Of a stretch of DNA of 64,000 bases, positions 22,147-55,500 are shown piece after piece. Each line of letters begins with the position of its first letter. Position 1 is the first letter of the stretch. The position numbers and the translations under genes were made by a program. The notes beneath the pieces were generated by a model. The model saw only the letters and a list, made by a program, of their open reading frames with translations, was not told where the DNA came from and did no database searches. Origin of the DNA: Macrostomum lignano (taxonomy: Eukaryota); NCBI GenBank assembly GCA_002269645.1, contig NIVC01000494.1, positions 1 through 64,000 of the forward strand, given 5' to 3'.

Positions 22147-22714
22147 CTTTCTGCTGCTGCTGCTGCTGGCGGTTGGTGGCACCTGCCGTTATCAAGTTGA
22201 CTGCGTGGAAGGAACTGCCAGCAAGATCATGCGACAGCACGCAAGCTGACTGACTGGAATTGAAAGTAGAAGCTTAAAGGCTTACAGTGTGGCTGTTTGT
22301 GCAACGAAGGAGGAGAGGAGAGAGAAAGAGGAGAGAATCAGAACCAGTAGACGCCATGACGGCCCAATCAGACCCCGTTTGCCTGGAAGAAGCAGACTCG
22401 GCTGGCATGCAATGCAACTTTCAGCTTGCCGTCTATTGTATCGCTGAAGCAAGCGTTTCTTTGTGCGATTTTTTCCCGACAAGATCTGCTTCTTATCAAC
22501 TATCATTTTCTACTTGATACATTGTACACGCTGGTATTGTTTGACGCCATCAATTTCTGGAGAGACTAAAAAGTTTGCCTTTTTTCTGTTGCTGTCTGCT
22601 AAATGCTTTCGAGACCAGCTTGGAAATTGTGTGATTCCTGGGTGGCTGCCACATGGATGCCAAATTCCTAATCCACATCTGCTAATTCCTATTTCTCAAA
22701 CGTCAAATCCCGGT

Positions 22715-25322: not shown

Positions 25323-25619
25323 TGTAATAAAATGGAAAATTCGAGTAAACAGCAGCTGCAGCATAAGATGTCGCTTAACGTTATTGACACGCAAGCGTTA
25401 AGAGGTGCTGCTGTGTTACGCAATCATTCTCTGCAAGATTTTCGTATTTCGATTTGGGTATGGGCGCTTTTAGCCTGCTCAACTGCTTCTGCATGCTTGA
25501 GTAGTTTTCTGGCTTGCTTGTTACTCACTGATTCTTCTCTTGCATGAAACTCGTAATTTTTAAAGAAACCTTGAAATTTTTTGTTCAATAAATTGAATAA
25601 ATTCTAACATGAAGCAGTG

Positions 25620-26945: not shown

Positions 26946-27544
26946 GTTTGGAGTCTAACGAGTTTAATTCTTAGTCGGGAGATTCACATTTTACATATCG
27001 ATACACATATACGTCATGCATTTCATACACGCTACTGTTAACAGCAGGGGATTTATAATATAAATTCAACCAACAACAAATAACTAACCATATTTTGTTG
27101 CTTGTGTTTTTAATAATCATAAACTTCAGCATGTGAAGCTCAACTAACTGATTTAGAAAACTGAACTTGTTGTAACTTTATTTTAAAGCCACTTGCAGCC
27201 GAAAATGTAAGAAATTTTCGTGCTTAAGGGTACAGTAGAGAGTGCAGACTATAGTAAACATCTATTTTTAGCATGGGAAAAAAAGACAGTTTAAGCGTTC
27301 AGCTACACGGCAGTAGGCTAGTGACTCACCATGCACCCATGCATTCAGCCCGGTTTAAGAATATGGCAGCGTGCCAATTTTGGGCATGGAGCTTCTTTAG
27401 TTGCCAACTAAGCTTTATAAGCTGCGTGTATGCGTTCACATCCTGGAGAAAGAATTATGATAAAAGTACACTGTATACGAATGCTGGTTCAAAAATGAGT
27501 TTACAATACATGGTACATGTAAACCATCCATGAAACAACAATTG

Positions 27545-29140: not shown

Positions 29141-29589
29141 GACCCTAAAGTCCATCCAGTTTTGACTACCAGGACTACCAGAAATCCTCTTGCAGTGCGT
29201 TCTTGGTTCAGAAAAGTTTAGCGGAAATGTACCGCATAAGATTGTAACAAATTTTCTTACAGCTGATATTTAATTAGGACTATGGACTGCTTTTTAGGGC
29301 CCTGCCCGGATCCCTAGAGATTTTGGAGCGTGCAATGAATTTTAAATCCATAAAGAAAAATTTCGTTCCTTGTATTCTTTTCTTTTTCTTTGCACAAAAA
29401 TCATAAAGTTGGTAATAAGATTTGCCCAAATTTTGGACCGTTAACTAATACCATTTCATACTTTAGTAATATTACGAGCGTATGAATGAATGTATGCCCT
29501 GCCTGGCAATATGGTGTACATACATGTAAGAACTTTATAATTGTATTTACATGTATGGGATGCGCCCTTTAAAAATATCATCGAAATGA

Positions 29590-31524: not shown

Positions 31525-31596
31525 TCACTTTGTCACGTCGGCCTCTTCATCAGATTCTTCTTCGGCTTGGTCCAACCAGTTGAGGAACTTGTTTAG
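31525..31596 (-). CDS. EIF4G2: eIF4G2 last coding exon (end of W2)
   Basis: attccag|LNKFLNWLDQAEEESDEEADVTK*; TGA overlaps AATAAA. Confidence 0.9.
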   Translation of the reverse strand, partial: LNKFLNWLDQAEEESDEEADVTK

Positions 31597-34500
31597 CTGG
31601 AATTGGGAGTTTATGGGAGATTCCATGGGTAGTTTATGGGAGATTCCATGGGTAGTTTATGGGAGATTCCATGGGTAGTTTATGGGAGATTCTATGGGTA
31701 TTTTATGAAAGATTTAAATGGGTAGTTTATTGGAAATTTTATGGGTAGCTTATGGGAGATTCTTTAGGTAGTTTATGGGAGATTCCATGGGTAGTTTATG
31801 GGAGATTCCATGGGTAGTTTATGGGAGATTCTATGGGTAGTTTATGGGAGATTCTATGGGTAGCTTATGGGAGATAATATGGGTAGTTTATGGGAGATTC
31901 TATGGGTAGTTTATGGGAGATTCTATGGGTAGTTTATGGGAGATTCTATGGGTAGTTTATGGGAGATTCTATGGGTAGTTTATGGGAGATTCTATGGGTA
32001 GTTTATTGGAGATTTCATGGGTAGTTTATGGGAGATTTCATGGGTAGTTTATGGGAGATCATATGGGTAGCTTATGGGAGATTCTATGGGTATTTTATGA
32101 AAAATTTAAATGGGTAGTTTATTGGAAATTTTATGGGTAGCTTATGGGAGATTCTATGGGTAGTTTATGGGAGATTCTATGGGTAGTTCATGGGAGATTC
32201 TATGGGTAACTTATGCGAGATTCCATGGGTAGTTTATTGGAGATTTTATGGGTAGTTTATGGGAGATTCTATGGGTAGCTTATTGGAGATTCTATGGGTA
32301 GTTTATGAGAGATTTAAATGGGTAGCTTATGGGAGATTCTATGGGTAGTTTATGGGAGATTCTATGGGTAGTTTATGGGAGATTCTATGGGTAGTTTATT
32401 GGAGATTTCATGGGTAGTTTATGGGAGATTTCATGGGTAGTTTATGGGAGATCATATGGGTAGCTTATGGGAGATTCTATGGGTAGTTTATGAGAGATTT
32501 AAATGGGTAGTTTATGGGAGATTCTATGGGTAGTTTATGGGAGATTCTATGGGTAGCTTATGGAAGATTCTATGGGTAGTTTATGGGAGATTCTATGAGT
32601 AGCTTATGGGAGATTCTATGGGTAGTTTATGGGAGATTCTATAGGTAGCTGATGGGAGATTCTATGGGTAGTTTATGGGAGATTCTATGGGTAGCTTATG
32701 GGAGATTATATGGGTAGTTTATGGGAGATTCTATGGGTAGCTTATGGGAGATTATATGGGTAGCTTATGGGAGATTCTATGGGTAGTTTATGGGAGATTC
32801 TATGGGTAGCTTATGGGATATTCTATGGGTAGTTTATGGGAGATTCTATGGATAGTTTATGGGAGATTCTATGGGTAGCTTATGGGATATTCTATGGGTA
32901 GTTTATGGGAGATTCTATGGATAGTTTATGGGAGATTCTATGGGTAGTTTATGGGAGATTCTATGGGTAGTTTATGGGAGATTCTATGGGTATTTTATGG
33001 GAGATTTTATGGGTAGTTTATGGGAGATCATATGGGTAGCTTATGGGAGATTCTATGGGTAGCTTATGGGAGATTCTATGGGTAGCTTATGGGAGATTCT
33101 AGGGGTAGTTTATTGGAGATTAGATAGGGGTAGTTTATTGAAGATTAGACTATCTCCCTTAGAAGAAAACAAAGCACCAACCTGAAACAGCGCCTTGCCC
33201 TTGTCCGGGAGATCATATGGGAGATCATATGGGTATCTTATGAGGGATTCTATGGGTAGTTTATGAGAGATCATATGGGTAGCTTATGGGAGATTCTATG
33301 GGTAGTTTATGAGAGATTTAAATGGGTAGTTTATGGGAGATTCTATGGGTAGTTTATGGGAGATTCTATGGGTAGCTTATGGAAGATTCTATGGGTAGTT
33401 TATGGGAGATTCTATGAGTAGCTTATGGGAGATTCTATGGGTAGTTTATGGGAGATTCTATAGGTAGCTGATGGGAGATTCTATGGGTAGTTTATGGGAG
33501 ATTCTATGGGTAGCTTATGGGAGATTATATGGGTAGTTTATGGGAGATTCTATGGGTAGCTTATGGGAGATTATATGGGTAGCTTATGGGAGATTCTATG
33601 GGTAGTTTATGGGAGATTCTATGGGTAGCTTATGGGATATTCTATGGGTAGTTTATGGGAGATTCTATGGATAGTTTATGGGAGATTCTATGGGTAGTTT
33701 ATGGGAGATTCTATGGGTAGTTTATGGGAGATTCTATGGGTAGTTTATGAAAGATTTAAATGGGTAGTTTATTGGAAATTTTATGGGTAGCTTATGGGAG
33801 ATTCTATGGGTAGTTTATGGGAGATTCTATGGGTAGTTTATGGGAGATTCTATGGGTAGTTTATGGGAGATTCTATGGGTAGTTTATTGGAGATTTTATG
33901 GGTAGTTTATGGAAGATTTCATGGGTAGTTTATGAAAGATCATATGGGTAGCTTATGGGAGATTCTATGGGTAGTTTATGAAAAATTTAAATGGGTAGCT
34001 TATGGGAGATTCTATGGGTAGTTTATGGGAGATTCTATGGGTAGTTTATGGGAGATTCTATGGGTAGTTTATGGGAGATTCTATGGGTAGTTTATGAGAG
34101 ATTTAAATGGGTAGCTTATGGGAGATTCTATGGGTAGTTTATGGGAGATTCTATGGATAGTTTATGGGAGATTCTATGGGTAGTTTATGGGAGATTCTAT
34201 GGGTAGTTTATGGGAGATTCTATGGGTAGCTTATGGGAGATTCTATGGGTAGCTTATGGGAGATTCTAGGGGTAGTTTATTGGAGATTAGATAGGGGTAG
34301 TTTATTGGAGATTAGACTATCTCCCTTAGAAGAAAACAAAGCACCAACCTGAAACAGCGCCTTGCCCTTGTCCGGGAGATCATATGGGAGATCATATGGG
34401 TATCTTATGGGAGATTCTATGGGTAGTTTATGAGAGATTTAAATGGGTAGTTTATGGGAGATTCTATGGGTAGTTTATGGGAGATTCTATGGGTAGCTAA

Positions 34501-37500
34501 TGGGAGATTCTATGGGTAGTTTATGGGAGATTCTATGAGTAGCTTATGGGAGATTCTATGGGTAGTTTATGGGAGATTCTATGGGTAGCTTATGGGAGAT
34601 TCTATGGGTAGTTTATGAGAGATTCTATGGGTAGCTTATGGGAGATTATATGGGTAGTTTATGGGAGATTCTATGGGTAGCTTATGGGAGATTATATGGG
34701 TAGTTTATGGGAGATTCTATGGGTAGTTTATGGGAGATTCTATGGGTAGCTTATGGGATATTCTATGGGTTGTTTATGAGAGATTCTATGGATAGTTTAT
34801 GGGAGATTCTATGGGTAGTTTATGGGAGATTCTATGGGTAGTTTATGGGAGATTCTATGGGTATTTTATGAAAGATTTAAATGGGTAGTTTATTGGAAAT
34901 TTTATGGGTAGCTTATGGGAGATTCTATGGGTAGTTTATGGGAGATTCTATGGGTAGTTTATGGGAGATTCTATGGGTAGTTTATGGGAGATTCTATGGG
35001 TAGTTTATTGGAGATTTCATGGGTAGTTTATGGGAGATTTCATGGGTAGTTTATGGGAGATCATATGGGTAGCTTATGGGAGATTCTATGGGTAGTTTAT
35101 GAAAAATTTAAATGGGTAGCTTATGGGAGATTCTATGGGTAGTTTATGGGAGATTCTATGGGTAGTTTATGGGAGATTCTATGGGTAGTTTATGAGAGAT
35201 TTAAATGGGTAGCTTATGGGAGATTCTATGGGTAGTTTATGGGAGATTCTATGGATAGTTTATGGGAGATTCTATGGGTAGTTTATGGGAGATTCTATGG
35301 GTAGTTTATGGGAGATTCTATGGGTAGCTTATGGGAGATTCTATGGGTAGCTTATGGGAGATTCTAGGGGTAGTTTATTGGAGATTAGATAGGGGTAGTT
35401 TATTGGAGATTAGACTATCTCCCTTAGAAGAAAACAAAGCACCAACCTGAAACAGCGCCTTGCCCTTGTCCGGAAGATCATATGGGAGATCATATGGGTA
35501 TCTTATGGGAGATTCTATGGGTAGTTTATGAGAGATTTAAATGGGTAGTTTATGGGAGATTCTATGGGTAGTTTATGGAAGATTCTATGGGTAGCTAATG
35601 GGAGATTCTATGGGTAGTTTATGGGAGATTCTATGAGTAGCTTATGGGAGATTCTATGGGTAGTTTATGGGAGATTCTATGGGTAGCTTATGGGAGATTC
35701 TATGGGTAGTTTATGGGAGATTCTATGGGTAGCTTATGGGAGATTATATGGGTAGTTTATGGGAGATTCTATGGGTAGCTTATGGGAGATTATATGGGTA
35801 GTTTATGGGAGATTCTATGGGTAGTTTATGGGAGATTCTATGGGTAGCTTATGGGATATTCTATGGGTTGTTTATGAGAGATTCTATGGATAGTTTATGG
35901 GAGATTCTATGGGTAGTTTATGGGAGATTCTATGGGTAGTTTATGGGAGATTCTATGGGTATTTTATGAAAGATTTAAATGGGTAGTTTATTGGAAATTT
36001 TATGGGTAGCTTATGGGAGATTCTATGGGTAGTTTATGGGAGATTCTATGGGTAGTTTATGGGAGATTCTATGGGTAGTTTATGGGAGATTCTATGGGTA
36101 GTTTATTGGAGATTTCATGGGTAGTTTATGGGAGATTTCATGGGTAGTTTATGGGAGATCATATGGGTAGCTTATGGGAGATTCTATGGGTAGTTTATGA
36201 AAAATTTAAATGGGTAGCTTATGGGAGATTCTATGGGTAGTTTATGGGAGATTCTATGGGTAGTTTATGGGAGATTCTATGGGTAGTTTATGAGAGATTT
36301 AAATGGGTAGCTTATGGGAGATTCTATGGGTAGTTTATGGGAGATTCTATGGATAGTTTATGGGAGATTCTATGGGTAGTTTATGGGAGATTCTATGGGT
36401 AGTTTATGGGAGATTCTATGGGTAGCTTATGGGAGATTCTATGGGTAGCTTATGGGAGATTCTAGGGGTAGTTTATTGGAGATTAGATAGGGGTAGTTTA
36501 TTGGAGATTAGACTATCTCCCTTAGAAGAAAACAAAGCACCAACCTGAAACAGCGCCTTGCCCTTGTCCGGGAGATCATATGGGAGATCATATGGGTAGC
36601 TTATGGGAGATTCTATGGGTAGTTTATGAGAGATCATATGGGTATCTTATGAGAGATTCTATGGGTAGTTTATGGGAGATTCTATGGGTAGCTTATGGGA
36701 GATTATATGGGTAGTTTATGGGAGATTCTATGGGTAGTTTATGGGAGATTCTATGGGTAGCTTATGGGATATTCTATGGGTAGTTTATGGGAGATTCTAT
36801 GGATAGTTTATGGGAGATTCTATGGGTAGTTTATGGGAGATTCTATGGGTAGTTTATGGGAGATTCTATGGGTATTTTATGAAAGATTTAAATGGGTAGT
36901 TTATTGGAAATTTTATGGGTAGCTTATGGGAGATTCTATGGGTAGTTTATGGGAGATTCTATGGGTAGTTTATGGGAGATTCTATGGGTAGTTTATGGGA
37001 GATTCTATGGTAGTTTATTGGAGATTTCATGGGTAGTTTATGGAAGATTTCATGGGTAGTTTATGAAAGATCATATGGGTAGCTTATGGGAGATTCTATG
37101 GGTAGTTTATGAAAAATTTAAATGGGTAGCTTATGGGAGATTCTATGGGTAGTTTATGGGAGATTCTATGGGTAGTTTATGGGAGATTCTATGGGTAGTT
37201 TATGGGAGATTCTATGGGTAGTTTATGAGAGATTTAAATGGGTAGCTTATGGGAGATTCTATGGGTAGTTTATGGGAGATTCTATGGATAGTTTATGGGA
37301 GATTCTATGGGTAGTTTATGGGAGATTCTATGGGTAGTTTATGGGAGATTCTATGGGTAGCTTATGGGAGATTCTATGGGTAGCTTATGGGAGATTCTAG
37401 GGGTAGTTTATTGGAGATTAGATAGGGGTAGTTTATTGGAGATTAGACTATCTCCCTTAGAAGAAAACAAAGCACCAACCTGAAACAGCGCCTTGCCCTT

Positions 37501-40500
37501 GTCCGGGAGATCATATGGGAGATCATATGGGTATCTTATGGGAGATTCTATGGGTAGTTTATGAGAGATTTAAATGGGTAGTTTATGGGAGATTATATGG
37601 GTAGTTTATGGGAGATTCTATGGGTAGCTAATGGGAGATTCTATGGGTAGTTTATGGGAGATTCTATGAGTAGCTTATGGGAGATTCTATGGGTAGTTTA
37701 TGGGAGATTCTATGGGTAGCTTATGGGAGATTCTATGGGTAGTTTATGGGAGATTCTATGGGTAGCTTATGGGAGATTATATGGGTAGTTTATGGGAGAT
37801 TCTATGGGTAGCTTATGGGAGATTATATGGGTAGTTTATGGGAGATTCTATGGGTAGTTTATGGGAGATTCTATGGGTAGCTTATGGGATATTCTATGGG
37901 TAGTTTATGAGAGATTCTATGGATAGTTTATGGGAGATTCTATGGGTAGTTTATGGGAGATTCTATGGGTAGTTTATGGGAGATTCTATGGGTATTTTAT
38001 GAAAGATTTAAATGGGTAGTTTATTGGAAATTTTATGGGTAGCTTATGGGAGATTCTATGGGTAGTTTATGGGAGATTCTATGGGTAGTTTATGGGAGAT
38101 TCTATGGGTAGTTTATGGGAGATTCTATGGGTAGTTTATTGGAGATTTCATGGGTAGTTTATGGGAGATTTCATGGGTAGTTTATGGGAGATCATATGGG
38201 TAGCTTATGGGAGATTCTATGGGTAGTTTATGAAAAATTTAAATGGGTAGCTTATGGGAGATTCTATGGGTAGTTTATGGGAGATTCTATGGGTAGTTTA
38301 TGAGAGATTTAAATGGGTAGCTTATGGGAGATTCTATGGGTAGTTTATGGGAGATTCTATGGATAGTTTATGGGAGATTCTATGGGTAGTTTATGGGAGA
38401 TTCTATGGGTAGTTTATGGGAGATTCTATGGGTAGCTTATGGGAGATTCTATGGGTAGCTTATGGGAGATTCTAGGGGTAGTTTATTGGAGATTAGATAG
38501 GGGTAGTTTATTGGAGATTAGACTATCTCCCTTAGAAGAAAACAAAGCACCAACCTGAAACAGCGCCTTGCCCTTGTCCGGGAGATCATATGGGAGATCA
38601 TATGGGTATCTTATGGGAGATTCTATGGGTAGTTTATGAGAGATTTAAATGGGTAGTTTATGGGAGATTATATGGGTAGTTTATGGGAGATTCTATGGGT
38701 AGCTAATGGGAGATTCTATGGGTAGTTTATGGGAGATTCTATGAGTAGCTTATGGGAGATTCTATGGGTAGTTTATGGGAGATTCTATGGGTAGCTTATG
38801 GGAGATTCTATGGGTAGTTTATGGGAGATTCTATGGGTAGCTTATGGGAGATTATATGGGTAGTTTATGGGAGATTCTATGGGTAGCTTATGGGAGATTA
38901 TATGGGTAGTTTATGGGAGATTCTATGGGTAGTTTATGGGAGATTCTATGGGTAGCTTATGGGATATTCTATGGGTAGTTTATGAGAGATTCTATGGATA
39001 GTTTATGGGAGATTCTATGGGTAGTTTATGGGAGATTCTATGGGTAGTTTATGGGAGATTCTATGGGTATTTTATGAAAGATTTAAATGGGTAGTTTATT
39101 GGAAATTTTATGGGTAGCTTATGGGAGATTCTATGGGTAGTTTATGGGAGATTCTATGGGTAGTTTATGGGAGATTCTATGGGTAGTTTATGGGAGATTC
39201 TATGGGTAGTTTATTGGAGATTTCATGGGTAGTTTATGGGAGATTTCATGGGTAGTTTATGGGAGATCATATGGGTAGCTTATGGGAGATTCTATGGGTA
39301 GTTTATGGGAAATTAAATGGGTAGCTTATGGGAGATTCTATGGGTAGTTTATGGGAGATTCTATGGGTAGTTTATGGGAGATTCTATGGGTAGTTTATGA
39401 GAGATTTAAATGGGTAGCTTATGGGAGATTCTATGGGTAGTTTATGGGAGATTCTATGGATAGTTTATGGGAGATTCTATGGGTAGTTTATGGGAGATTC
39501 TATGGGTAGTTTATGGGAGATTCTATGGGTAGCTTATGGGAGATTCTATGGGTAGCTTATGGGAGATTCTAGGGGTAGTTTATTGGAGATTAGATAGGGG
39601 TAGTTTATTGGAGATTAGACTATCTCCCTTAGAAGAAAACAAAGCACCAACCTGAAACAGCGCCTTGCCCTTGTCCGGGAGATCATATGGGAGATCATAT
39701 GGGTATCTTATGGGAGATTCTATGGGTAGTTTATGAGAGATTTAAATGGGTAGTTTATGGGAGATTCTATGGGTAGTTTATGGGAGATTCTATGGGTAGC
39801 TAATGGGAGATTCTATGGGTAGTTTATGGGAGATTCTATGAGTAGCTTATGGGAGATTCTATGGGTAGTTTATGGGAGATTCTATGGGTAGCTTATGGGA
39901 GATTCTATGGGTAGTTTATGGGAGATTCTATGGGTAGCTTATGGGAGATTATATGGGTAGTTTATGGGAGATTCTATGGGTAGCTTATGGGAGATTATAT
40001 AGGTAGTTTATGGGAGATTCTATGGGTAGTTTATGGGAGATTCTATGGGTAGCTTATGGGATATTCTATGGGTTGTTTATGAGAGATTCTATGGATAGTT
40101 TATGGGAGATTCTATGGGTAGTTTATGGGAGATTCTATGGGTAGTTTATGGGAGATTCTATGGGTATTTTATGAAAGATTTAAATGGGTAGTTTATTGGA
40201 AATTTTATGGGTAGCTTATGGAGATTCTATGGGTAGTTTATGGGAGATTCTATGGGTAGTTTATGGGAGATTCTATGGGTAGTTTATGGGAGATTCTATG
40301 GGTAGTTTATTGGAGATTTCATGGGTAGTTTATGGGAGATTTCATGGGTAGTTTATGGGAGATCATATGGGTAGCTTATGGGAGATTCTATGGGTAGTTT
40401 ATGAAAATTTAAATGGGTAGCTTATGGGAGATTCTATGGGTAGTTTATGGGAGATTCTATGGGTAGTTTATGGGAGATTCTATGGGTAGTTTATGAGAGA

Positions 40501-43500
40501 TTTAAATGGGTAGCTTATGGGAGATTCTATGGGTAGTTTATGGGAGATTCTATGGATAGTTTATGGGAGATTCTATGGGTAGTTTATGGGAGATTCTATG
40601 GGTAGTTTATGGGAGATTCTATGGGTAGCTTATGGGAGATTCTATGGGTAGCTTATGGGAGATTCTAGGGGTAGTTTATTGGAGATTAGATAGGGGTAGT
40701 TTATTGGAGATTAGACTATCTCCCTTAGAAGAAAACAAAGCACCAACCTGAAACAGCGCCTTGCCCTTGTCCGGGAGATCATATGGGAGATCATATGGGT
40801 AGCTTATGGGAGATTCTATGGGTAGTTTATGAGAGATCATATGGGTATCTTATGAGAGATTCTATGGGTAGTTTATGGGAGATTCTATGGGTAGCTTATG
40901 GGAGATTATATGGGTAGTTTATGGGAGATTCTATGGGTAGTTTATGGGAGATTCTATGGGTAGCTTATGGGATATTCTATGGGTAGTTTATGGGAGATTC
41001 TATGTATAGTTTATGGGAGATTCTATGGGTAGTTTATGGGAGATTCTATGGGTAGTTTATGGGAGATTCTATGGGTATTTTATGAAAGATTTAAATGGGT
41101 AGTTTATTGGAAATTTTATGGGTAGCTTATGGGAGATTCTATGGGTAGTTTATGGGAGATTCTATGGGTAGTTTATGGGAGATTCTATGGGTAGTTTATT
41201 GGAGATTTCATGGGTAGTTTATGGAAGATTTCATGGGTAGTTTATGAAAGATCATATGGGTAGCTTATGGGAGATTCTATGGGTAGTTTATGAAAAATTT
41301 AAATGGGTAGCTTATGGGAGATTCTATGGGTAGTTTATGGGAGATTCTATGGGTAGTTTATGGGAGATTCTATGGGTAGTTTATGGGAGATTCTATGGGT
41401 AGTTTATGAGAGATTTAAATGGGTAGCTTATGGGAGATTCTATGGGTAGTTTATGGGAGATTCTATGGATAGTTTATGGGAGATTCTATGGGTAGTTTAT
41501 GGGAGATTCTATGGGTAGTTTATGGGAGATTCTATGGGTAGCTTATGGGAGATTCTATGGGTAGCTTATGGGAGATTCTAGGGGTAGTTTATTGGAGATT
41601 AGATAGGGGTAGTTTATTGGAGATTAGACTATCTCCCTTAGAAGAAAACAAAGCACCAACCTGAAACAGCGCCTTGCCCTTGTCCGGGAGATCATATGGG
41701 AGATCATATGGGTATCTTATGGGAGATTCTATGGGTAGTTTATGAGAGATTTAAATGGGTAGTTTATGGGAGATTCTATGGGTAGTTTATGGGAGATTCT
41801 ATGGGTAGCTAATGGGAGATTCTATGGGTAGTTTATGGGAGATTCTATGGGTAGCTTATGGGAGATTCTATGGGTAGTTTATGGGAGATTCTATGGGTAG
41901 CTTATGGGAGATTCTATGGGTAGTTTATGGGAGATTCTATGGGTTGCTTATGGGAGATTATATGGGTAGTTTATGGGAGATTCTATGGGTAGCTTATGGG
42001 AGATTATATGGGTAGTTTATGGGAGATTCTATGGGTAGTTTATGGGAGATTCTATGGGTAGCTTATGGGATATTCTATGGGTAGTTTATGAGAGATTCTA
42101 TGGATAGTTTATGGGAGATTCTATGGGTAGTTTATGGGAGATTCTATGGGTAGTTTATGGGAGATTCTATGGGTATTTTATGAAAGATTTAAATGGGTAG
42201 TTTATTGGAAATTTTATGGGTAGCTTATGGGAGATTCTATGGGTAGTTTATGGGAGATTCTATGGGTAGTTTATGGGAGATTCTATGGGTAGTTTATGGG
42301 AGATTCTATGGGTAGTTTATTGGAGATTTCATGGGTAGTTTATGGGAGATTTCATGGGTAGTTTATGGGAGATCATATGGGTAGCTTATGGGAGATTCTA
42401 TGGGTAGTTTATGAAAAATTTAAATGGGTAGCTTATGGGAGATTCTATGGGTAGTTTATGGGAGATTCTATGGGTAGTTTATGGGAGATTCTATGGGTAG
42501 TTTATGAGAGATTTAAATGGGTAGCTTATGGGAGATTCTATGGGTAGTTTATGGGAGATTCTATGGATAGTTTATGGGAGATTCTATGGGTAGTTTATGG
42601 GAGATTCTATGGGTAGTTTATGGGAGATTCTATGGGTAGCTTATGGGAGATTCTATGGGTAGCTTATGGGAGATTCTAGGGGTAGTTTATTGGAGATTAG
42701 ATAGGGGTAGTTTATTGGAGATTAGACTATCTCCCTTAGAAGAAAACAAAGCACCAACCTGAAACAGCGCCTTGCCCTTGTCCGGGAGATCATATGGGAG
42801 ATCATATGGGTAGCTTATGGGAGATTCTATGGGTAGTTTATGAGAGATCATATGGGTATCTTATGAGAGATTCTATGGGTAGTTTATGAGAGATCATATG
42901 GGTAGCTTATGGGAGATTCTATGGGTAGTTTATGAGAGATTTAAATGGGTAGTTTATGGGAGATTCTATGGGTAGTTTATGGGAGATTCTATGGGTAGCT
43001 TATGGGAGATTCTATGGGTAGTTTATGGGAGATTCTATGAGTAGCTTATGGGAGATTCTATGGGTAGTTTATGGGAGATTCTATAGGTAGCTTATGGGAG
43101 ATTCTATGGGTAGTTTATGGGAGATTCTATGGGTAGCTTATGGGAGATTATATGGGTAGTTTATGGGAGATTCGATGGGTAGCTTATGGGAGATTATATG
43201 GGTAGTTTATGGGAGATTCTATGGGTAGTTTATGGGAGATTCTATGGGTAGCTTATGGGAGATTCTATGGGTAGTTTATGGGAGATTCTATGGATAGTTT
43301 ATGGGAGATTCTATGGGTAGTTTATGGGAGATTCTATGGGTAGTTTATGGGAGATTCTATGGGTATTTTATGAAAGATTTAAATGGGTAGTTTATTGGAA
43401 ATTTTATGGGTAGCTTATGGGAGATTCTATGGGTAGTTTATGGGAGATTCTATGGGTAGTTTATGGGAGATTCTATGGGTAGTTTATGGGAGATTCTATG

Positions 43501-46500
43501 AGTAGCTTATGGGAGATTCTATGGGTAGTTTATGGGAGATTCTATAGGTAGCTTATGGGAGATTCTATGGGTAGTTTATGGGAGATTCTATGGGTAGCTT
43601 ATGGGAGATTATATGGGTAGTTTATGGGAGATTCGATGGGTAGCTTATGGGAGATTCGATGGGTAGCTTATGGGAGATTATATGGGTAGTTTATGGGAGA
43701 TTCTATGGGTAGTTTATGGAGATTCTATGGGTAGCTTATGGGAGATTCTATGGGTAGTTTATGGGAGATTCTATGGATAGTTTATGGGAGATTCTATGGG
43801 TAGTTTATGGGAGATTCTATGGGTAGTTTATGGGAGATTCTATGGGTATTTTATGAAAGATTTAAATGGGTAGTTTATTGGAAATTTTATGGGTAGCTTA
43901 TGGGAGATTCTAGGGGTAGTTTATTGGAGATTAGATAGGGGTAGTTTATTGGAGATTAGACTATCTCCCTTAGAAGAAAACAAAGCACCAACCTGAAACA
44001 GCGCCTTGCCCTTGTCCGGGAGATCATATGGGAGATCATATGGGTAGCTTATGGGAGATTCTATGGGTAGTTTATGAGAGATCATATGGGTATCTTATGA
44101 GAGATTCTATGGGTAGTTTATGAGAGATCATATGGGTAGCTTATGGGAGATTCTATGGGTAGTTTATGAGAGATTTAAATGGGTAGTTTATGGGAGATTC
44201 TATGGGTAGTTTATGGGAGATTCTATGGGTAGCTTATGGGAGATTCTATGGGTAGTTTATGGGAGATTCTATGAGTAGCTTATGGGAGATTCTATGGGTA
44301 GTTTATGGGAGATTCTATAGGTAGCTTATGGGAGATTCTATGGGTAGTTTATGGGAGATTCTATGGGTAGCTTATGGGAGATTCTATGGGTAGCTTATGG
44401 GAGATTCTATGAGTAGCTTATGGGAGATTCTATGGGTAGTTTATGGGAGATTCTATAGGTAGCTTATGGGAGATTCTATGGGTAGTTTATGGGAGATTCT
44501 ATGGGTAGCTTATGGGAGATTATATGGGTAGTTTATGGGAGATTCTATGGGTAGCTTATGGGAGATTATATGGGTAGTTTATGGGAGATTCTATGGGTAG
44601 TTTATGGGAGATTCTATGGGTAGCTTATGGGAGATTCTATGGGTAGTTTATGGGAGATTCTATGGATAGTTTATGGGAGATTCTATGGGTAGTTTATGGG
44701 AGATTCTATGGGTAGTTTATGGGAGATTCTATGGGTATTTTATGAAAAATTTAAATGGGTAGTTTATTGGAAATTTTATGGGTAGCTTATGGGAGATTCT
44801 ATGGGTAGTTTATGGGAGATTCTATGGGTAGTTTATGGGAGATTCTATGGGTAACTTATGCGAGATTCCATGGGTAGTTTATTGGAGATTTTATGGGTAG
44901 TTTATGGGAGATTCTATGGGTAGCTTATTGGAGATTCTATGAGTAGTTTATGAGAGATTTAAATGGGTAGCTTGTGGGAGATTCTATGGGTAGTTTATGG
45001 GAGATTCTATGGGTAGTTTATGGGAGATTCTATGGGTAGTTTATGGGAGATTCTATGGGTAGTTTATGGGAGATTCTATGGGTAGCTTATGGGAGATTCT
45101 ATGGGTAGCTTATGGGAGATTCTAGGGGTAGTTTATTGGAGATTAGATAGGGGTAGTTTATTGGAGATTAGACTATCTCCCTTAGAAGAAAACAAAGCAC
45201 CAACCTGAAACAGCGCCTTGCCCTTGTCCGGGAGATCATATGGGAGATCATATGGGTATCTTATGAGAGATTCTATGGGTAGTTTATGAGAGATCATATG
45301 GGTAGCTTATGGGAGATTCTATGGGTAGTTTATGAGAGATCATATGGGTAGCTTATGGGAGATTCTATGGGTAGTTTATGAGAGATTTAAATGGGTAGCT
45401 TGTGGGAGATTCTATGGGTAGTTTATGGGAGATTCTATGGGTAGTTTATGGGAGATTCTATGAGTAGCTTATGGGAGATTCTATGGGTAGTTTATGGGAG
45501 ATTCTATAGGTAGCTTATGGGAGATTCTATGGGTAGTTTATGGGAGATTCTATGGGTAGCTTATGGGAGATTATATGGGTAGTTTATGGGAGATTCTATG
45601 GGTAGCTTATGGGAGATTATATGGGTAGTTTATGGGAGATTCTATGGGTAGTTTATGGGAGATTCTATGGGTAGTTTATGAAAAATTTAAATGGGTAGCT
45701 TATGGGAGATTCTATGGGTAGTTTATGGGAGATTCTATGGGTAGTTTATGGGAGATTCTATGGGTAGTTTATGAGAGATTTAAATGGGTAGCTTATGGGA
45801 GATTCTATGGGTAGTTTATGGGAGATTCTATGGATAGTTTATGGGAGATTCTATGGGTAGTTTATGGGAGATTCTATGGGTAGTTTATGGGAGATTCTAT
45901 GGGTAGCTTATGGGAGATTCTATGGGTAGCTTATGGGAGATTCTAGGGTAGTTTATTGGAGATTAGATAGGGGTAGTTTATTGGAGATTAGACTATCTCC
46001 CTTAGAAGAAAACAAAGCACCAACCTGAAACAGCGCCTTGCCCTTGTCCGGGAGATCATATGGGAGATCATATGGGTAGCTTATGGGAGATTCTATGGGT
46101 AGTTTATGAGAGATCATATGGGTATCTTATGAGAGATTCTATGGGTAGTTTATGAGAGATCATATGGGTAGCTTATGGGAGATTCTATGGGTAGTTTATG
46201 AGAGATTTAAATGGGTAGTTTATGGGAGATTCTATGGGTAGTTTATGGGAGATTCTATGGGTAGCTTATGGGAGATTCTATGGGTAGTTTATGGGAGATT
46301 CTATGAGTAGCTTATGGGAGATTCTATGGGTAGTTTATGGAGATTCTATAGGTAGCTTATGGGAGATTCTATGGGTAGTTTATGGGAGATTCTATGGGTA
46401 GCTTATGGGAGATTATATGGGTAGTTTATGGGAGATTCGATGGGTAGCTTATGGGAGATTATATGGGTAGTTTATGGGAGATTCTATGGGTAGTTTATGG

Positions 46501-49500
46501 GAGATTCTATGGGTAGCTTATGGGAGATTCTATGGGTAGTTTATGGGAGATTCTATGGATAGTTTATGGGAGATTCTATGGGTAGTTTATGGGAGATTCT
46601 ATGGGTAGTTTATGGGAGATTCTATGGGTATTTTATGAAAGATTTAAATGGGTAGTTTATTGGAAATTTTATGGGTAGCTTATGGGAGATTCTATGGGTA
46701 GTTTATGGGAGATTCTATGGGTAGTTTATGGGAGATTCTATGGGTAGTTTATGGGAGATTCTATGAGTAGCTTATGGGAGATTCTATGGGTAGTTTATGG
46801 GAGATTCTATAGGTAGCTTATGGGAGATTCTATGGGTAGTTTATGGGAGATTCTATGGGTAGCTTATGGGAGATTATATGGGTAGTTTATGGGAGATTCG
46901 ATGGGTAGCTTATGGGAGATTCGATGGGTAGCTTATGGGAGATTATATGGGTAGTTTATGGGAGATTCTATGGGTAGTTTATGGGAGATTCTATGGGTAG
47001 CTTATGGGAGATTCTATGGGTAGTTTATGGGAGATTCTATGGATAGTTTATGGGAGATTCTATGGGTAGTTTATGGGAGATTCTATGGGTAGTTTATGGG
47101 AGATTCTATGGGTATTTTATGAAAGATTTAAATGGGTAGTTTATTGGAAATTTTATGGGTAGCTTATGGGAGATTCTAGGGGTAGTTTATTGGAGATTAG
47201 ATAGGGGTAGTTTATTGGAGATTAGACTATCTCCCTTAGAAGAAAACAAAGCACCAACCTGAAACAGCGCCTTGCCCTTGTCCGGGAGATCATATGGGAG
47301 ATCATATGGGTAGCTTATGGGAGATTCTATGGGTAGTTTATGAGAGATCATATGGGTATCTTATGAGAGATTCTATGGGTAGTTTATGAGAGATCATATG
47401 GGTAGCTTATGGGAGATTCTATGGGTAGTTTATGAGAGATTTAAATGGGTAGTTTATGGGAGATTCTATGGGTAGTTTATGGGAGATTCTATGGGTAGCT
47501 TATGGGAGATTCTATGGGTAGTTTATGGGAGATTCTATGAGTAGCTTATGGGAGATTCTATGGGTAGTTTATGGGAGATTCTATAGGTAGCTTATGGGAG
47601 ATTCTATGGGTAGTTTATGGGAGATTCTATGGGTAGCTTATGGGAGATTCTATGGGTAGCTTATGGGAGATTCTATGAGTAGCTTATGGGAGATTCTATG
47701 GGTAGTTTATGGGAGATTCTATAGGTAGCTTATGGGAGATTCTATGGGTAGTTTATGGGAGATTCTATGGGTAGCTTATGGGAGATTATATGGGTAGTTT
47801 ATGGGAGATTCTATGGGTAGCTTATGGGAGATTATATGGGTAGTTTATGGGAGATTCTATGGGTAGTTTATGGGAGATTCTATGGGTAGCTTATGGGAGA
47901 TTCTATGGGTAGTTTATGGAGATTCTATGGATAGTTTATGGGAGATTCTATGGGTAGTTTATGGGAGATTCTATGGGTAGTTTATGGGAGATTCTATGGG
48001 TATTTTATGAAAAATTTAAATGGGTAGTTTATTGGAAATTTTATGGGTAGCTTATGGGAGATTCTATGGGTAGTTTATGGGAGATTCTATGGGTAGTTTA
48101 TGGGAGATTCTATGGGTAACTTATGCGAGATTCCATGGGTAGTTTATTGAAGATTTTATGGGTAGTTTATGGGAGATTCTATGGGTAGCTTATTGGAGAT
48201 TCTATGGGTAGTTTATGAGAGATTTAAATGGGTAGCTTGTGGGAGATTCTATGGGTAGTTTATGGGAGATTCTATGGGTAGTTTATGGGAGATTCTATGG
48301 GTAGTTTATGGGAGATTCTATGGGTAGTTTATGGGAGATTCTATGGGTAGCTTATGGGAGATTCTATGGGTAGCTTATGGGAGATTCTAGGGGTAGTTTA
48401 TTGGAGATTAGATAGGGGTAGTTTATTGGAGATTAGACTATCTCCCTTAGAAGAAAACAAAGCACCAACCTGAAACAGCGCCTTGCCCTTGTCCGGGAGA
48501 TCATATGGGAGATCATATGGGTATCTTATGAGAGATTCTATGGGTAGTTTATGAGAGATCATATGGGTAGCTTATGGGAGATTCTATGGGTAGTTTATGA
48601 GAGATCATATGGGTAGCTTATGGGAGATTCTATGGGTAGTTTATGAGAGATTCTATGGGTAGTTTATGGGAGATTCTATGAGTAGCTTATGGGAGATTCT
48701 ATGGGTAGTTTATGGGAGATTCTATAGGTAGCTTATGGGAGATTCTATGGGTAGTTTATGGGAGATTCTATGGGTAGCTTATGGGAGATTATATGGGTAG
48801 TTTATGGGAGATTCTATGGGTAGCTTATGGGAGATTATATGGGTAGTTTATGGGAGATTCTATGGGTAGCTAATGGGAGATTCTATGGGTAGTTTATGGG
48901 AGATTCTATGAGTAGCTTATGGGAGATTCTATGGGTAGTTTATGGGAGATTCTATGGGTAGCTTATGGGAGATTCTATGGGTAGTTTATGGGAGATTCTA
49001 TGGGTAGCTTATGGGAGATTATATGGGTAGTTTATGGGAGATTCTATGGGTAGCTTATGGGAGATTATATGGGTAGTTTATGGGAGATTCTATGGGTAGT
49101 TTATGGGAGATTCTATGGGTAGCTTATGGGATATTCTATGGGTAGTTTATGAGAGATTCTATGGATAGTTTATGGGAGATTCTATGGGTAGTTTATGGGA
49201 GATTCTATGGGTAGTTTATGGGAGATTCTATGGGTATTTATGAAAGATTTAAATGGGTAGTTTATTGGAAATTTATGGGTAGCTTATGGGAGATTCTATG
49301 GGTAGTTTATGGGAGATTCTATGGGTAGTTTATGGGAGATTCTATGGGTAGTTTATGGGAGATTCTATGGGTAGTTTATTGGAGATTTCATGGGTAGTTT
49401 ATGGGAGATTTCATGGGTAGTTTATGGGAGATCATATGGGTAGCTTATGGGAGATTCTATGGGTAGTTTATGAAAAATTTAAATGGGTAGCTTATGGGAG

Positions 49501-52500
49501 ATTCTATGGGTAGTTTATGGAGATTCTATGGGTAGTTTATGGGAGATTCTATGGGTAGTTTATGAGAGATTTAAATGGGTAGCTTATGGGAGATTCTATG
49601 GGTAGTTTATGGGAGATTCTATGGATAGTTTATGGGAGATTCTATGGGTAGTTTATGGGAGATTCTATGGGTAGTTTATGGGAGATTCTATGGGTAGCTT
49701 ATGGGAGATTCTATGGGTAGCTTATGGGAGATTCTAGGGTAGTTTATTGGAGATTAGATAGGGGTAGTTTATTGGAGATTAGACTATCTCCCTTAGAAGA
49801 AAACAAAGCACCAACCTGAAACAGCGCCTTGCTCTTGTCCGGGAGATCATATGGGAGATCATATGGGTAGCTTATGGGAGATTCTATGGGTAGTTTATGA
49901 GAGATCATATGGGTATCTTATGAGAGATTCTATGGGTAGTTTATGAGAGATCATATGGGTAGCTTATGGGAGATTCTATGGGTAGTTTATGAGAGATTTA
50001 AATGGGTAGTTTATGGGAGATTCTATGGGTAGTTTATGGGAGATTCTATGGGTAGCTTATGGGAGATTCTATGGGTAGTTTATGGGAGATTCTATGAGTA
50101 GCTTATGGGAGATTCTATGGGTAGTTTATGGGAGATTCTATAGGTAGCTTATGGGAGATTCTATGGGTAGTTTATGGGAGATTCTATGGGTAGCTTATGG
50201 GAGATTATATGGGTAGTTTATGGGAGATTCGATGGGTAGCTTATGGGAGATTATATGGGTAGTTTATGGGAGATTCTATGGGTAGTTTATGGGAGATTCT
50301 ATGGGTAGCTTATGGGAGATTCTATGGGTAGTTTATGGGAGATTCTATGGATAGTTTATGGGAGATTCTATGGGTAGTTTATGGGAGATTCTATGGGTAG
50401 TTTATGGAGATTCTATGGGTATTTTATGAAAGATTTAAATGGGTAGTTTATTGGAAATTTTATGGGTAGCTTATGGGAGATTCTATGGGTAGTTTATGGG
50501 AGATTCTATGGGTAGTTTATGGGAGATTCTATGGGTAGTTTATGGGAGATTCTATGAGTAGCTTATGGGAGATTCTATGGGTAGTTTATGGGAGATTCTA
50601 TAGGTAGCTTATGGGAGATTCTATGGGTAGTTTATGGGAGATTCTATGGGTAGCTTATGGGAGATTATATGGGTAGTTTATGGGAGATTCGATGGGTAGC
50701 TTATGGGAGATTCGATGGGTAGCTTATGGGAGATTATATGGGTAGTTTATGGGAGATTCTATGGGTAGTTTATGGGAGATTCTATGGGTAGCTTATGGGA
50801 GATTCTATGGGTAGTTTATGGGAGATTCTATGGATAGTTTATGGGAGATTCTATGGGTAGTTTATGGGAGATTCTATGGGTAGTTTATGGGAGATTCTAT
50901 GGGTATTTTATGAAAGATTTAAATGGGTAGTTTATTGGAAATTTTATGGGTAGCTTATGGGATATTCTATGGGTAGTTTATGGGATATTCTATGGGAGTT
51001 AGATGGGGTAGTTTATGGGAGATTAGACTATCTCCCTTAGAAGAAAACAAAGCACCAACCTGAAACAGCGCCTTGCCTTTGTCCGGATAAGCGTGGTTGA
51101 CCTCCTCTTTCCAGCGCACAATCGTTTCCTCGTCGCAGATGTCCAGATCGTACACAGCCATGAATGCGCGCAGCAGAGCATTGGGCGGGTTGCCAGCCCG
51201 GCTCCAGTGCACCAGTAGGCCATTGAGCAGCTCCAGGCCGTCCAGTTCGGCTAGAAGCTGCGCGTAGGGACCGAGACGGGCCTGGGCAATGGTGGCAATT
51301 TGATTTGATTATAGTGAGTGCAGTTGAATAGATAAACAGAAGATATCAAATCTCACTGTAGACTAGAGAATATCCGAAATCTCACCTTTAGATTAGAGAA
51401 AGACTGAAAAAAGTCTTACCCTTAGATTAGAGAAAGAAAATCGGATAACTCACCCTTAGGGAAAGACGATTTGAAATCTCACCCTTAGTTTTAGAAAGAA
51501 GATCCAAAATCTCACCATTAGATAAGAGAAAGACGATTTGAAGTCTCCCTCTTAGATTAGAGAAAGATCTGAAATCTCATCCTTAGATTAGAGAAATAAG
51601 ATTTAAAATCTCACCCTTACATTAGAGAAAGACAATTTGAAGTCTAACCGTTAGATTAGAGAAAGAAGATCGGATAACTCATCCTTAGGGAAAGACGATT
51701 TGAAATCTCACGCTTAGATTAGAGATAGATATTAAAATATGACCCTTAGGCCTTAGATTAGAGAAAGATTCGCAATCTCAACCCCTACAAGAGAATAAAG
51801 CTTCGAAATTTCACAAAACACAGAGTCTAGAGCTCATTCCTGCTGACCTTCTCTAACTGCAGTTTCTCCTTGTCAGTGTGCTCGGCACTGCTAGGATCGG
51901 TCTCCACAGCGGCATAGACGTGATGCACCAGGGCGTGAACAAATTCCGGCTTGCACAACAGTTCCGAATCGGCCTCGGCTACGAAAGCAGCAACAGCATC
52001 TGGCGAAGTGCCAACTCGACCGCGGCGAAGATCTTCGAGTAGTTTGAGTTTGGGCACTAAACTGGTCAAGCCGCGTTCTTCAACGGCGGCTAAGAGATCG
52101 GCGCCTTCGGGCAGAAGGTCGGACAGCTGCAAGCCAGATTCGGACAGTCTGGCTCGGGTCCAATCTGGTGACCGATTGGCTACCAGCTGCTGGAGTAGCA
52201 GCAGTCCGAGCGGATGGTGCCGACCACCGCGAAGTACAGCGAAACAGTCGGATAGGGAAACCTGCGTGTCGGGTTTTGGTTGGTTGGTTTATTAGTTTTT
52301 GGGGTATAATTATGAGAATATGGGACATAATTATATGAGAATATGGGATATAACTATGAGAATATGGGATATAACTATGAGAATATGGGATATAACTATG
52401 AGAATATGGGATATAACTATGAGAATTGGGATAGAATTATAGGAATATGGGATATAACTATGAGAATATGGGATATAACTATGAGAATATGGGATATAAC

Positions 52501-55500
52501 TATGAGAATATGGGATATAACTATGAGAATATGGGATATAACTATGAGAATTGGGATAGAATTATAGGAATATGGGATATAACTATGAGAATATGGGATA
52601 TAACTATGAGAATATGGGATATAGCTATGAGAATATGGGATATAACTATGAGAACATGGGATATAACTATGAGAGTATGGGATATAACTATGAGAATAGG
52701 GGATATATAACTATGAAAATATGGGATATAATTAAATGATAATATGGGATATAACCATGAGAATATGGGATATAACCATGAGAATATAGGATATAATTAT
52801 ATGAGAATATGGGATTTAACTATGAAAATATGGGATATAATTATATGATAATATGGGATATAATTATGAGAATATGGGATGTATTTATGAGTAAATGGGA
52901 TATAACTATGAGAATATGGGATATAACTATAAGAATATGGGATATAACTATGAGAATATGGGATATAACTATATAACTATGAGAATATGTGATATAACTA
53001 TAAGAATATGGGATATAATTGAGAATATGGGATATAACTATGAGAATATGGGATATAACTATGAGAAAATGGGATATAACTATGAGAATATGGGATATAA
53101 TTGAGAATATGGGATATAACTATGAGAATATGGGATATAACTACAGTCATGCACAAAAGTAAGTACACCCCAAGCAAAAATCGAGAAAAACTGTTAAAAT
53201 TTCTGAACTGTCAGCTGTATTACAACAAAACTGCATCACAATGATCCTTATTGACTGGCATTTATTTTGACACATCAAGCTTTGAAAAACTCTTTGTGGC
53301 TACGGAGCTATGGCAAAAAATGCTCAAACACACCTGTGCAAAAGTAAGTACACCCTGTCTTAATACTTTGTAGCTCCACCTCGTGCAGCCACCACAGCCA
53401 AGAGCCGCTTGCGGTAGCCATTCACCAGCGCAGCGCACCTCTCAGCGGGCACTTTCCGCCACTCCTCGATGCAGAATTCGGCCAATTCCCGCAGATTCTT
53501 CGGCTTCCTCGCGTGAACCATCTTCTTGAGATCCGTCCACAGCATCTCGATCGGATTCAGGTCAGGGCTCTGGCTTGGCCACTCCATGACCTTGATGCGC
53601 CTCTGCTGCAGCCATCGCCGAGTTGCAGCGCTTGTGTGCTTGGGGTCATTGTCCTGCTGCAGTGTCCAAGCTTGTCAAGACCGAGGTCATGCACTGATGG
53701 CTGCAGGTTTTCATCAAGGATCTGCTGATACACAGCCGAATTCATCTTCTCGGTGATGTGCATCAGCCTGCCGGTGCCAGCAGCTGCAAAGCAGCCCCAC
53801 AGCATGATGCTGCCGCCTCCGTGCTTGACTGTCGGCTTCAGGTGTTTCTGCTCAAATGCGGTGTTCGGCTTGCGCCACACGCGCTGCTTCTCATTCCTGC
53901 CGAACAGCTCAATCTTGGTTTCATCAGTCCAAAGCACTGACTGCCAGTAGCTGTCTGGCTTGCTCAACATCGCATTAGCAAACTGCAGCCTGGCATCGCG
54001 ATGTCGCTGCTGCAGCAGAGGCTTTTTTCTTGGAATGCAGCTGCGGAGGCCTGCGCGGTTCAGGGCTCGGCGAACAGTAGTCCTGTGCGGCAATAAGCCA
54101 GCTGCATTCAGCATCTGCTGCAGCTCGCCTGATGTTGCATTCGGGTTTTGGCTGACCTCTTGCGTGAGTTTGCGCAGCGCGCGAGCTGAAATTTTACTCG
54201 GCCGGCCACTGCGAGGCAGAGATGCTGTGGTGCCATTCTGCTTGTACTTTGCGATGATGCGCCTAACTGTTGATATATGCACATTGAAGGCAGTCGATAT
54301 CCGCTTGTAGCCATCGCCACTATCGTGAGCTGCTACAATGCGATTTCTTAACTGAACTGACAGCTCCTGGCCTCTTGGCATTGTCCTGGCGTGTATCAAG
54401 TCAATGATGAAGCGGCTGCATTGCACATAAGCTTTATAGTAGCATGAAAACCAGTAGCTGAGCCGATTGAGGGCAGGGGCAAGCAGGACTAAAGTTGCTG
54501 GTGACGTAACAGGCAGTGAGGCGGCTGGCAATGTACTTATGGTGGCTCGCATCTGCACAGAGGAGGTTATACTGGTAGTAAACGGCAGGGTGTACTTACT
54601 TTTGCACAGGTGTGTTTGAGCATTTTTTGCCATAGCTCCGTAGCCACAAAGAGTTTTTCAAAGCTTGATATGTCAAAATAAATGCCAGTCAATAAGGATC
54701 ATTGTGATGCAGTTTTGTTGTAATACAGCTGACGGTTCAGAAATTTTAACAGTTTTTCTCAATTTTTGCTTGGGGTGTACTTACTTTTGTGCATGACTGT
54801 ATGAGAATATGGGATATAACTATGAGAATATGGGATATAATTGAGAATATGGGATATAACTATGAGAATATGGGATATAACTATGAGAAAATGGGATACA
54901 CGATACTCGCTAAAATCAACAAATCAATAACAAACCTGATCAAGCAGAACCAGTTGGGCAACCAGTTTAGCGCTGCGCGAGCGAACCAACGTTACACCAG
55001 TGGACTCCAGCGAGGCCATGGACTGGTCGCAGTATTGCCTGAGGCCGCCCAGCACGGAGCCTGGTGGGCAGATTGGCTTCGTCTGCTGCTTTTCAGTTGA
55101 AGACGAACTGCTGCTGCCAAGCGATTCCAGCAGGCGCACAACGCCGACTGGCTCAGCCTCGATGCCCGACACCAGCAGGCGGTGCACGAGAAGCTCGGGA
55201 CGATCGAATGGCCAGGCGAGTTTAACCAGCTGCTCGCGCACCCAGGCATGATCGCCTGACCAAAGCCTGCCGCCTAGCGATTCGATGTCTCTGGCTGCGG
55301 TCACCTGCGATGGTGTGGGATTGCGTGCTGGGTCTGAGCAACTGGGGATCTGGGAGGCTGGCCCAGCAACTGAGGATCTGGGAGGCTGGCCCAGCAACTG
55401 GGGATCTGGGAGGCTGGCCCAGCAACTGAGGATCTGGGAGGCTGGCCCAGCAACTGAGGATCTGGGAGGCTGGCCCAGCAACTGAGGATCTGGGAGGCTG

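Follow-up and report, generated by a model that had tools for sequence, protein, structure and literature searches.

The last intron of an eIF4G2-like gene of Macrostomum lignano is filled by a minisatellite array that contains 16 near-exact copies of the junction between the penultimate coding exon and the intron itself. The gene lies on the minus strand of contig NIVC01000494.1, and the analysis covers its first 64,000 nucleotides, here called the window. The feature is best seen as a higher-order minisatellite expansion, with a repeated unit that starts inside an exon. A first-pass annotation of the same sequence had noticed the array and proposed that the copies serve as stepping stones for recursive splicing. 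We confirm the array as observed, and the structural half of that reading is right, while the functional half is unsupported. The array is probably a structural by-product of repeat expansion, with the copies as passengers rather than as an evolved splicing device. It is a recent event, private to one of the three copies of this locus in the assembly.

Exon-end copies in the last intron

A 21-mer across the authentic junction, CTGTTTCAG/GTTGGTGCTTTG (that is, CTGTTTCAGGTTGGTGCTTTG; here and below a slash marks the splice position), occurs 17 times in the window, always on the minus strand, while 0.01 occurrences are expected from dinucleotide shuffles. One occurrence is the authentic junction, with the last exon base at 51060 and the first intron base at 51059, and 16 are inside the intron. 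Their first intron-like bases are exactly at the positions given by the first-pass annotation, i.e. 49815, 48469, 47258, 46024, 45204, 43992, 42758, 41660, 40747, 39651, 38554, 37479, 36544, 35446, 34348 and 33181. They are also the sole AG/GT sites of the intron, all 16 being CAG/GT.

Each copy, hereafter cassette, corresponds to the real junction from -27 to +42, save for a fixed difference at -19 and three singleton changes, see Table 1. The exon-derived part has 27 nt (25 nt plus a 2-nt CC microhomology) and not 26 nt as first described. Two allele differences had been proposed and both are present: position -19 is A in the real exon and G in the copies, and position +43 is C at the real junction and A in the copies. 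The difference at -19 is real, however a G at this position is by itself not diagnostic of a cassette, since both other gene copies have G as well. As originally described, the exon end and the donor have been amplified along with the satellite, at a spacing of 0.8-1.35 kb.

Table 1. Features of the eIF4G2-like gene and of its last intron. In the columns: the feature, the positions in the window, the strand, the supporting evidence and remarks. Cassettes are given from -27 to +42.
Feature	Positions	Strand	Evidence	Remarks
E2 (MIF4G)	56574-58131	minus	gene model, Pfam	
E3	54936-55304	minus	gene model	
E4	51848-52261	minus	gene model	
E5, penultimate coding exon	51060-51281	minus	gene model, Pfam W2, deposited protein	222 nt, ends ...TATCCGGACAAAGGCAAGGCGCTGTTTCAG, part of W2
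Authentic 5' splice site and unique intron leader	51018-51059	minus		GTTGGTGCTTTGTTTTCTTCTAAGGGAGATAGTCTAATCTCC, +1 to +42
Last intron	31597-51059	minus		19,463 nt, 17 higher-order minisatellite units
Cassette 1	49774-49842	minus		private G>A at -18
Cassette 2	48428-48496	minus		
Cassette 3	47217-47285	minus		
Cassette 4	45983-46051	minus		
Cassette 5	45163-45231	minus		
Cassette 6	43951-44019	minus		
Cassette 7	42717-42785	minus		
Cassette 8	41619-41687	minus		
Cassette 9	40706-40774	minus		
Cassette 10	39610-39678	minus		
Cassette 11	38513-38581	minus		
Cassette 12	37438-37506	minus		
Cassette 13	36503-36571	minus		
Cassette 14	35405-35473	minus		private C>T just upstream of junction (CTTCCGG)
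Cassette 15	34307-34375	minus		
Cassette 16	33140-33208	minus		nearest acceptor (donor 1,585 nt upstream of it), private C>T at +41
E6, last coding exon	31525-31596	minus	gene model, deposited protein	LNKFLNWLDQAEEESDEEADVTK plus stop

The gene had been named eIF4G2 from the sequence, and the evidence supports an eIF4G2-like protein. According to Pfam, the open frame assembled from the minus-strand exons contains a MIF4G (2e-33) and a W2 domain (1e-8), and PAA82091.1 (BOX15_Mlig023639g1) of Macrostomum lignano has the same sequence as the assembled protein (100% identity). After this entry the best named matches come from eIF4G2/DAP5 of a wide range of animals; they show 35-41% identity and cover about 30% of the query. 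Members of the eIF4G2/DAP5/NAT1 family have the domain order MIF4G, MA3 and W2, and Pfam found no MA3 in exons 3 and 4. The deposited model runs ...KGKALFQ into LNKFLNWL..., and the same junction was derived independently here. The acceptor of the last exon, ...CTCCCATAAACTCCCAATTCCAG, resembles a modified satellite monomer.

The intron is formed by about 840 copies of a 23-bp unit, CTACCCATAGAATCTCCCATAAA on the transcribed strand, as identified by Tandem Repeats Finder. The plus strand has a GC skew of +0.66 across the intron, the predicted transcript contains 6% G, and no open frame of at least 70 aa is found in the array on either strand. The satellite dimer has 496 genome-wide matches, all on one strand. 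A genome-wide satellite was considered and rejected, as among the matches listed the dimer is found only within the three copies of this locus.

With each unit taken to run from position -27 of a junction to the same position of the following one, the 17 units (numbered from u0) are 820-1,346 nt long, except the last one, which has 1,611 nt. The units are arranged head-to-tail, and a single left junction, ...CCCATATGATCTCC/CGGACAAGG..., is common to all 16 copies. At this junction satellite passes into exon at a shared CC; it can also be read as CATATGATCTCC/CGGAC, and there is one singleton variant. Four families can be distinguished, A (u0, u3, u6), B (u2, u5), C (u1, u7, u9-11, u13-15) and D (u8, u12), with 99.3-100% identity within families vs 93-97% between them. 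Units u3 and u6 are identical over all aligned columns, the two members of B are 99.8% identical and the two of D 99.9%. Unit lengths recur with periods of three and four units, and exact-run extension finds long exact runs at offsets of about 3,266 and 4,200 bp. The order of the families implies super-repeats of three units (~3.27 kb) and four units (~4.2 kb).

Such a regular structure could be suspected to come from the assembler, i.e. a Canu assembly of noisy PacBio reads from an animal with three subgenomes may have created or inflated the array. We find this unlikely. The array probably exceeds most reads of that era, so that its copy number and unit order depend on the assembler. The Mlig_3_7 assembly (764 Mb, 5,269 contigs) is a Canu draft from PacBio and Illumina data, with gene models from RNA-seq and a de novo transcriptome (PMC5730564), and mis-represented copy numbers have been documented for it (PMC10733133). 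However, the satellite-to-exon junction is in neither other copy of the locus and cannot come from collapse or looping. The units form four or more families, each with its own lengths and private variants, exact repeats around pairs of cassettes reach 1,056 bp at most, multi-kb identical loops were not found, and the window is without N or gap. These observations argue that several real cassettes exist, while the exact copy number and the unit order call for caution.

Some further properties of the array were noted. Every copied donor is followed by two AAUAAA hexamers, at +42 and +67, which come from the C to A substitution at +43 and from its counterpart in the next monomer. They make up 32 of the 67 AAUAAA of the intron, and the real junction has none at +42/+67; each unit in this way couples a U1 site with two polyadenylation-like hexamers. 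The plus (template) strand of 31597-51059 contains 1,352 GGG tracts, one every 11-12 nt, giving 766 overlapping quadruplex-type motifs with long loops (N1-12) and none with strict N1-7 loops. A 14-bp G-U-rich hairpin is predicted to place CAG/GU in its loop (42690-42830 and 50990-51130, minus strand). It lies wholly inside the duplicated stretch from -25 to +21 and is hence common to the real junction and all copies. We rejected it as a special feature, as it is no more stable than shuffled controls (z = -1.7 and -0.45).

Origin of the array

About 70% of Mlig_3_7 is present in three paralogous subgenomic copies, which differ by about 2% substitutions and by far more indels (PMC10733133). In agreement with this, the whole region is found twice more in the assembly, collinear on each of the contigs C4598 and C416, with annotated proteins that are 98-99% identical. 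The homologous intron has 751 and 1,510 nt in these sister copies vs 19,463 nt in the window. The sister introns consist of a 34-nt leader followed solely by the 23-bp repeat up to the acceptor, which again has the look of an altered monomer, and neither of them contains a cassette.

The comparison of the three copies suggests an order of events. The single left junction shared by all 16 cassettes points to one founding event. At +30 the real junction and the cassettes have T, and both sister copies have G, so the cassettes descend from this locus; the same private T rules out that they came from another gene copy by ectopic exchange. The copies and both sisters have G at -19, and the A of the real exon is therefore a later change. 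It belongs to the private alleles of the window copy, together with eleven substitutions in nine synonymous and two non-synonymous codons in E4, among them TGC for CGC and GCC for GTT, and an ACA (Thr) in E6. Finally, derived changes that are found in all copies and are absent from the real junction (A at +43 and others) indicate that the founder diverged before it was multiplied.

From this we propose the following course. At the start, the last intron would have been a single locus-private 23-bp minisatellite, running from +35 to the acceptor. In a first step, a tandem duplication in one of the three subgenomic copies would have joined the CC of a monomer (...CATATGATCTCC) to the exon CC 27 nt upstream of the donor, producing a unit of about 1.1 kb with exon end, donor, leader and satellite. 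The founder copy would then have gained its own changes, the C to A at +43 among them. Unequal exchange may have multiplied the founder to 16 copies, with later duplications of 3-unit (~3.27-kb) and 4-unit (~4.2-kb) blocks, and the intron would have grown from about 1 kb to 19.5 kb. The G to A change at -19 of the real exon, which is synonymous, would be the last step. The family pattern is what unequal exchange or replication slippage would be expected to leave in a growing array.

Selective constraint on the cassette was also considered. Its diversity among units is 0.0019, compared with 0-0.007 in the next ~250 nt, and 9% of the windows are as low or lower. Constraint was rejected, as the diversity is no lower than in the 250-nt flank.

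The array resembles other higher-order repeats, both those of satellites and those of intronic minisatellites or variable number tandem repeats, in its near-identical larger units, nested super-repeats and single founder junction, and in the big length differences between homologous loci. It differs from the usual ones in that the unit starts within a coding exon, so that a working-type splice donor and 27 nt of coding sequence have been multiplied with the satellite. A second likeness is found in the introns of the Y-linked fertility genes of Drosophila, which are satellite-filled, megabase-scale and fixed in the species, with a length that is mostly simple tandem repeat transcribed with the gene. 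In contrast, the array described here has 19.5 kb and is in one of three redundant gene copies. We know of no copies of exon junctions in the Drosophila Y-linked introns.

The locus shows minisatellite dynamics driving very large indel divergence between the subgenomes of M. lignano. If the cassettes are merely ignored or harmful, it is an ordinary, though unusually tidy, structural variant.

Each of the three gene copies has a mosaic structure. The window copy is almost identical to C4598 in E2-E3, with C416 as the outlier. In E4 the copies C4598 and C416 are identical and the window copy has eleven private substitutions. This pattern suggests exchange or gene conversion between subgenomic copies.

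Possible effects on splicing

In the stepping-stone proposal the authentic donor would join the AG of a cassette, the donor would be regenerated, and the intron would leave in up to 17 pieces of about 1 kb. We regard this as improbable. The tract upstream of the cassette AG is exon-derived beyond -8, with nine G between -25 and -4 against zero to three at six authentic acceptors (five of the eIF4G2-like gene and one of the neighbouring formin gene, compared by crude composition measures with no species-specific matrix). The pyrimidine fraction of the same region, 0.44, equals the lowest value of these acceptors (n = 6). No match to the yUnAy branch motif is seen before the cassette AG, and two other AGs (in CAAG and GCAAG) lie between the branch-like A proposed earlier and the CAG. 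The formin acceptor to which the cassette had been likened, ATATTGTTTCAG/GG at 10748, is present, and it shares merely an 8-mer with the cassette.

Recursive sites of flies and vertebrates depend on a cryptic recursive splice exon (RS-exon) with its own downstream donor (PMC8605326; PMC6110457). Among the 87 GT dinucleotides of the intron, 84 are in the 17 cassette positions, at offsets -7, 0, +4, +11 and +31, and three are elsewhere. The GTs that follow each cassette site at +4, +11 and +31 are all in poor contexts. No RS-exon donor is thus found after the cassette, and the next plausible donor is that of the next cassette, 0.8-1.35 kb further on. In flies, recursive introns have one to six sites and segments of 2.6-63.6 kb, in a host intron of at least 11 kb (10.1101/006163). 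The array, with 16 sites and segments of 0.8-1.35 kb, is outside this range, which has a maximum of six sites and a minimum of 2.6 kb. On the other side, segments of this length resemble the sister introns (0.75-1.5 kb) and the mean intron of the genome, 1.1-1.4 kb (PMC5730564), and the reading frame of the window copy is intact.

Among the units, conservation of the cassette also does not exceed that of the ~250 nt after it, and both sister loci lack it. All this evidence, together with sister introns of 0.75 and 1.5 kb that have no cassette, speaks against an intron that was given stepping stones for its removal. The intron owes its length to the array alone, and hence no long intron existed beforehand that would have needed help. 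To our knowledge recursive splicing has not been described in flatworms, and the Drosophila framing implicit in the first-pass annotation does not apply to a flatworm host.

The likeness to ratchet points of Drosophila and vertebrates is limited in the same way. Shared features are the juxtaposed AG and GT in a long intron, the TT at -5/-6 and the regenerated donor. Known ratchet points are conserved across species and have a prominent pyrimidine tract, a strong GTAAGT-like donor and an RS-exon donor (10.1101/006163; PMC8605326; PMC6110457). In contrast, the cassettes are exon-end duplicates diverged by a few percent, with a G-rich upstream tract and a GTTGGT donor; there are 16 of them about 1 kb apart, with no RS-exon donor, and there is none in the two other gene copies.

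Several observations weigh against cassettes that are mere passengers. The intron contains 16 exact AG/GT sites. The exon ends in CAG and each copy continues with GTTGGT..., and from the sequence, joining the exon to a copy, whichever it is, would restore the authentic donor without an added base, as had been pointed out. The cassettes have TT at -5/-6 (TGTTTCAG), as do 99.5% of the fly ratchet points, where it is accompanied by a prominent pyrimidine tract (10.1101/006163). The authentic acceptors of the eIF4G2-like gene are themselves weak and C/A-rich, and only six acceptors were compared. The frame of the window copy is intact, with about 10 synonymous to 4 non-synonymous private changes; purifying selection appears to have acted on this copy through most of its past, and it may be expressed to this day. 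Finally, the transcript-guided deposited model joins ...ALFQ to LNKF... across the 19.5-kb intron, although it could stem from reads of the two sister copies.

There is a small chance that the exon-initiated amplification accidentally made working zero-length recursive sites, and that the intron is removed in steps of about 1 kb, like the ancestral intron. If true, recursive splicing would be on record from a flatworm for the first time, and this would be the first birth of ratchet points readable directly from sequence; it would also mean that a repeat expansion can rescue its own splicing.

If the cassettes are passengers, they would nevertheless rival the authentic donor at full strength, and the intron has hardly any donor-like sequence besides them. 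The most probable effect on the window copy would be neutral to mildly harmful, by competition for the acceptor or by pseudo-exons that contain stops. Any loss would be buffered by the two other intact gene copies.

A stronger form of this effect is possible, if on balance doubtful. U1 would bind 17 identical donors, and the copies would compete for the acceptor or define poison exons of 55-114 nt. The window copy would then yield mostly aberrant, truncated or degraded RNA, which is compatible with a passenger origin. Alternatively, cassette 16, the nearest to the acceptor at 1,585 nt, could pair with it first. Between -27 and +42 the copies have the sequence of the real junction save the fixed difference at -19, and the satellite is rich in acceptor-like sites, with 443 of the form ...CTACCCATAG/ (...CCCATAG/) and about 200 of the form ...CCCATAAG/. 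In composition both kinds resemble the real last acceptor, the first with a pyrimidine fraction of 0.67 and one G. Candidate acceptors, ...CCCATAG/ or ...CATAAG/, lie 55-114 nt upstream of the cassette donor, which gives possible pseudo-exons of 55, 68, 101 and 114 nt, all with frame-0 stops.

A downstream 5' splice site stimulates U2AF binding and recognition at the upstream 3' splice site (PMC8724738). Each cassette could therefore define a pseudo-exon, an effect that favours decoys. The three-fold redundancy of the gene would tolerate the loss. However, this account presupposes that exon definition operates in M. lignano, and the sister copies must ignore the same satellite AGs. The signature of purifying selection, with no disabling mutation in the coding sequence of the window copy, also speaks against it.

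Deep-intronic creation of a 5' splice site can activate pseudo-exons in human disease alleles, and the array is alike in that a new donor lies downstream of a latent acceptor-like sequence. Unlike in the disease alleles, the donor here is an exact copy of the authentic one, present 16 times and made by duplication.

A third outcome, which had been offered as an alternative to recursive splicing, is the use of the internal acceptor ...CCCGGACAAG/GGC with the cassette donor. It would give 18-nt microexons that add GKALFQ repeats (GKALFQGKALFQ) to the W2 domain, and we consider it very unlikely. The 18-nt (GKALFQ) and 12-nt (ALFQ) pieces are in frame and stop-free, and they are the only pieces that stay in frame. 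The tract before CAAG/ is satellite-derived, and its composition (pyrimidine fraction 0.56, three G) is like that of real acceptors. The acceptor is an AAG, however, and AAG is a poor acceptor trinucleotide. All three deposited protein models, that of the window copy included, have a single GKALFQ, and a search of the protein collection with the last 235 residues found no variant protein and no M. lignano transcript-derived protein.

The locus is a natural experiment with seventeen identical donors in the same -27 to +42 context and one acceptor, and with two array-less sister gene copies in the same nucleus as controls. It could be used to address whether the choice of donor among equals follows transcription order, acceptor proximity or exon context, whether an AG/GT made by duplication suffices for recursive splicing without an RS-exon, and whether an intronic repeat expansion harms the output of a gene.

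The host gene and its neighbourhood

Simple and tandem repeats form 15% of the M. lignano genome (PMC5730564), and every intron of the eIF4G2-like gene has its own tandem repeat (introns 1-4, 51282-59429). There is a 21-bp array at 52300-53143, 29-34-bp arrays at 51359-51729, an array of about 24 bp (translating to ...PQLLGQPPRSS...) at about 55300-56550 and another array at about 58360-59400. Such private minisatellites seem to set most of the intron length in this gene. Intron 3 also contains a Tc1/mariner-type transposase on the minus strand (53360-54657), with Sleeping-Beauty-like helix-turn-helix domains and DDE_3. It is split across two overlapping frames, and a dead copy with a frameshift is therefore probable.

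The deposited proteins of the window copy and of the C416 copy begin at an internal methionine (MASRRL...) of exon 2. The frame of E2 is open for about 210 more residues upstream of MASRRL... and runs on into a preceding exon, which has its end at 59430. As this upstream stretch holds the first half of MIF4G, the database models look 5'-truncated.

The neighbouring formin gene (about 7057-22188, minus strand) has a poly-proline FH1 region and, according to Pfam, four FH2 pieces at 21691-22188, 19940-20236, about 10630-10744 and 8985-9191. Its introns contain very large minisatellites (12381-15672, 23590-24748, 25604-27041 and 27455-29141). The long open frames at 4076-5694 and 10941-11945, both on the minus strand, have no match to a cellular gene. 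One of the long frames has DUF7041 and a Cys-rich motif typical of Gag-like proteins of retroelements, the others have no Pfam match, and all are probably degenerate mobile elements, located within the formin gene or next to it.

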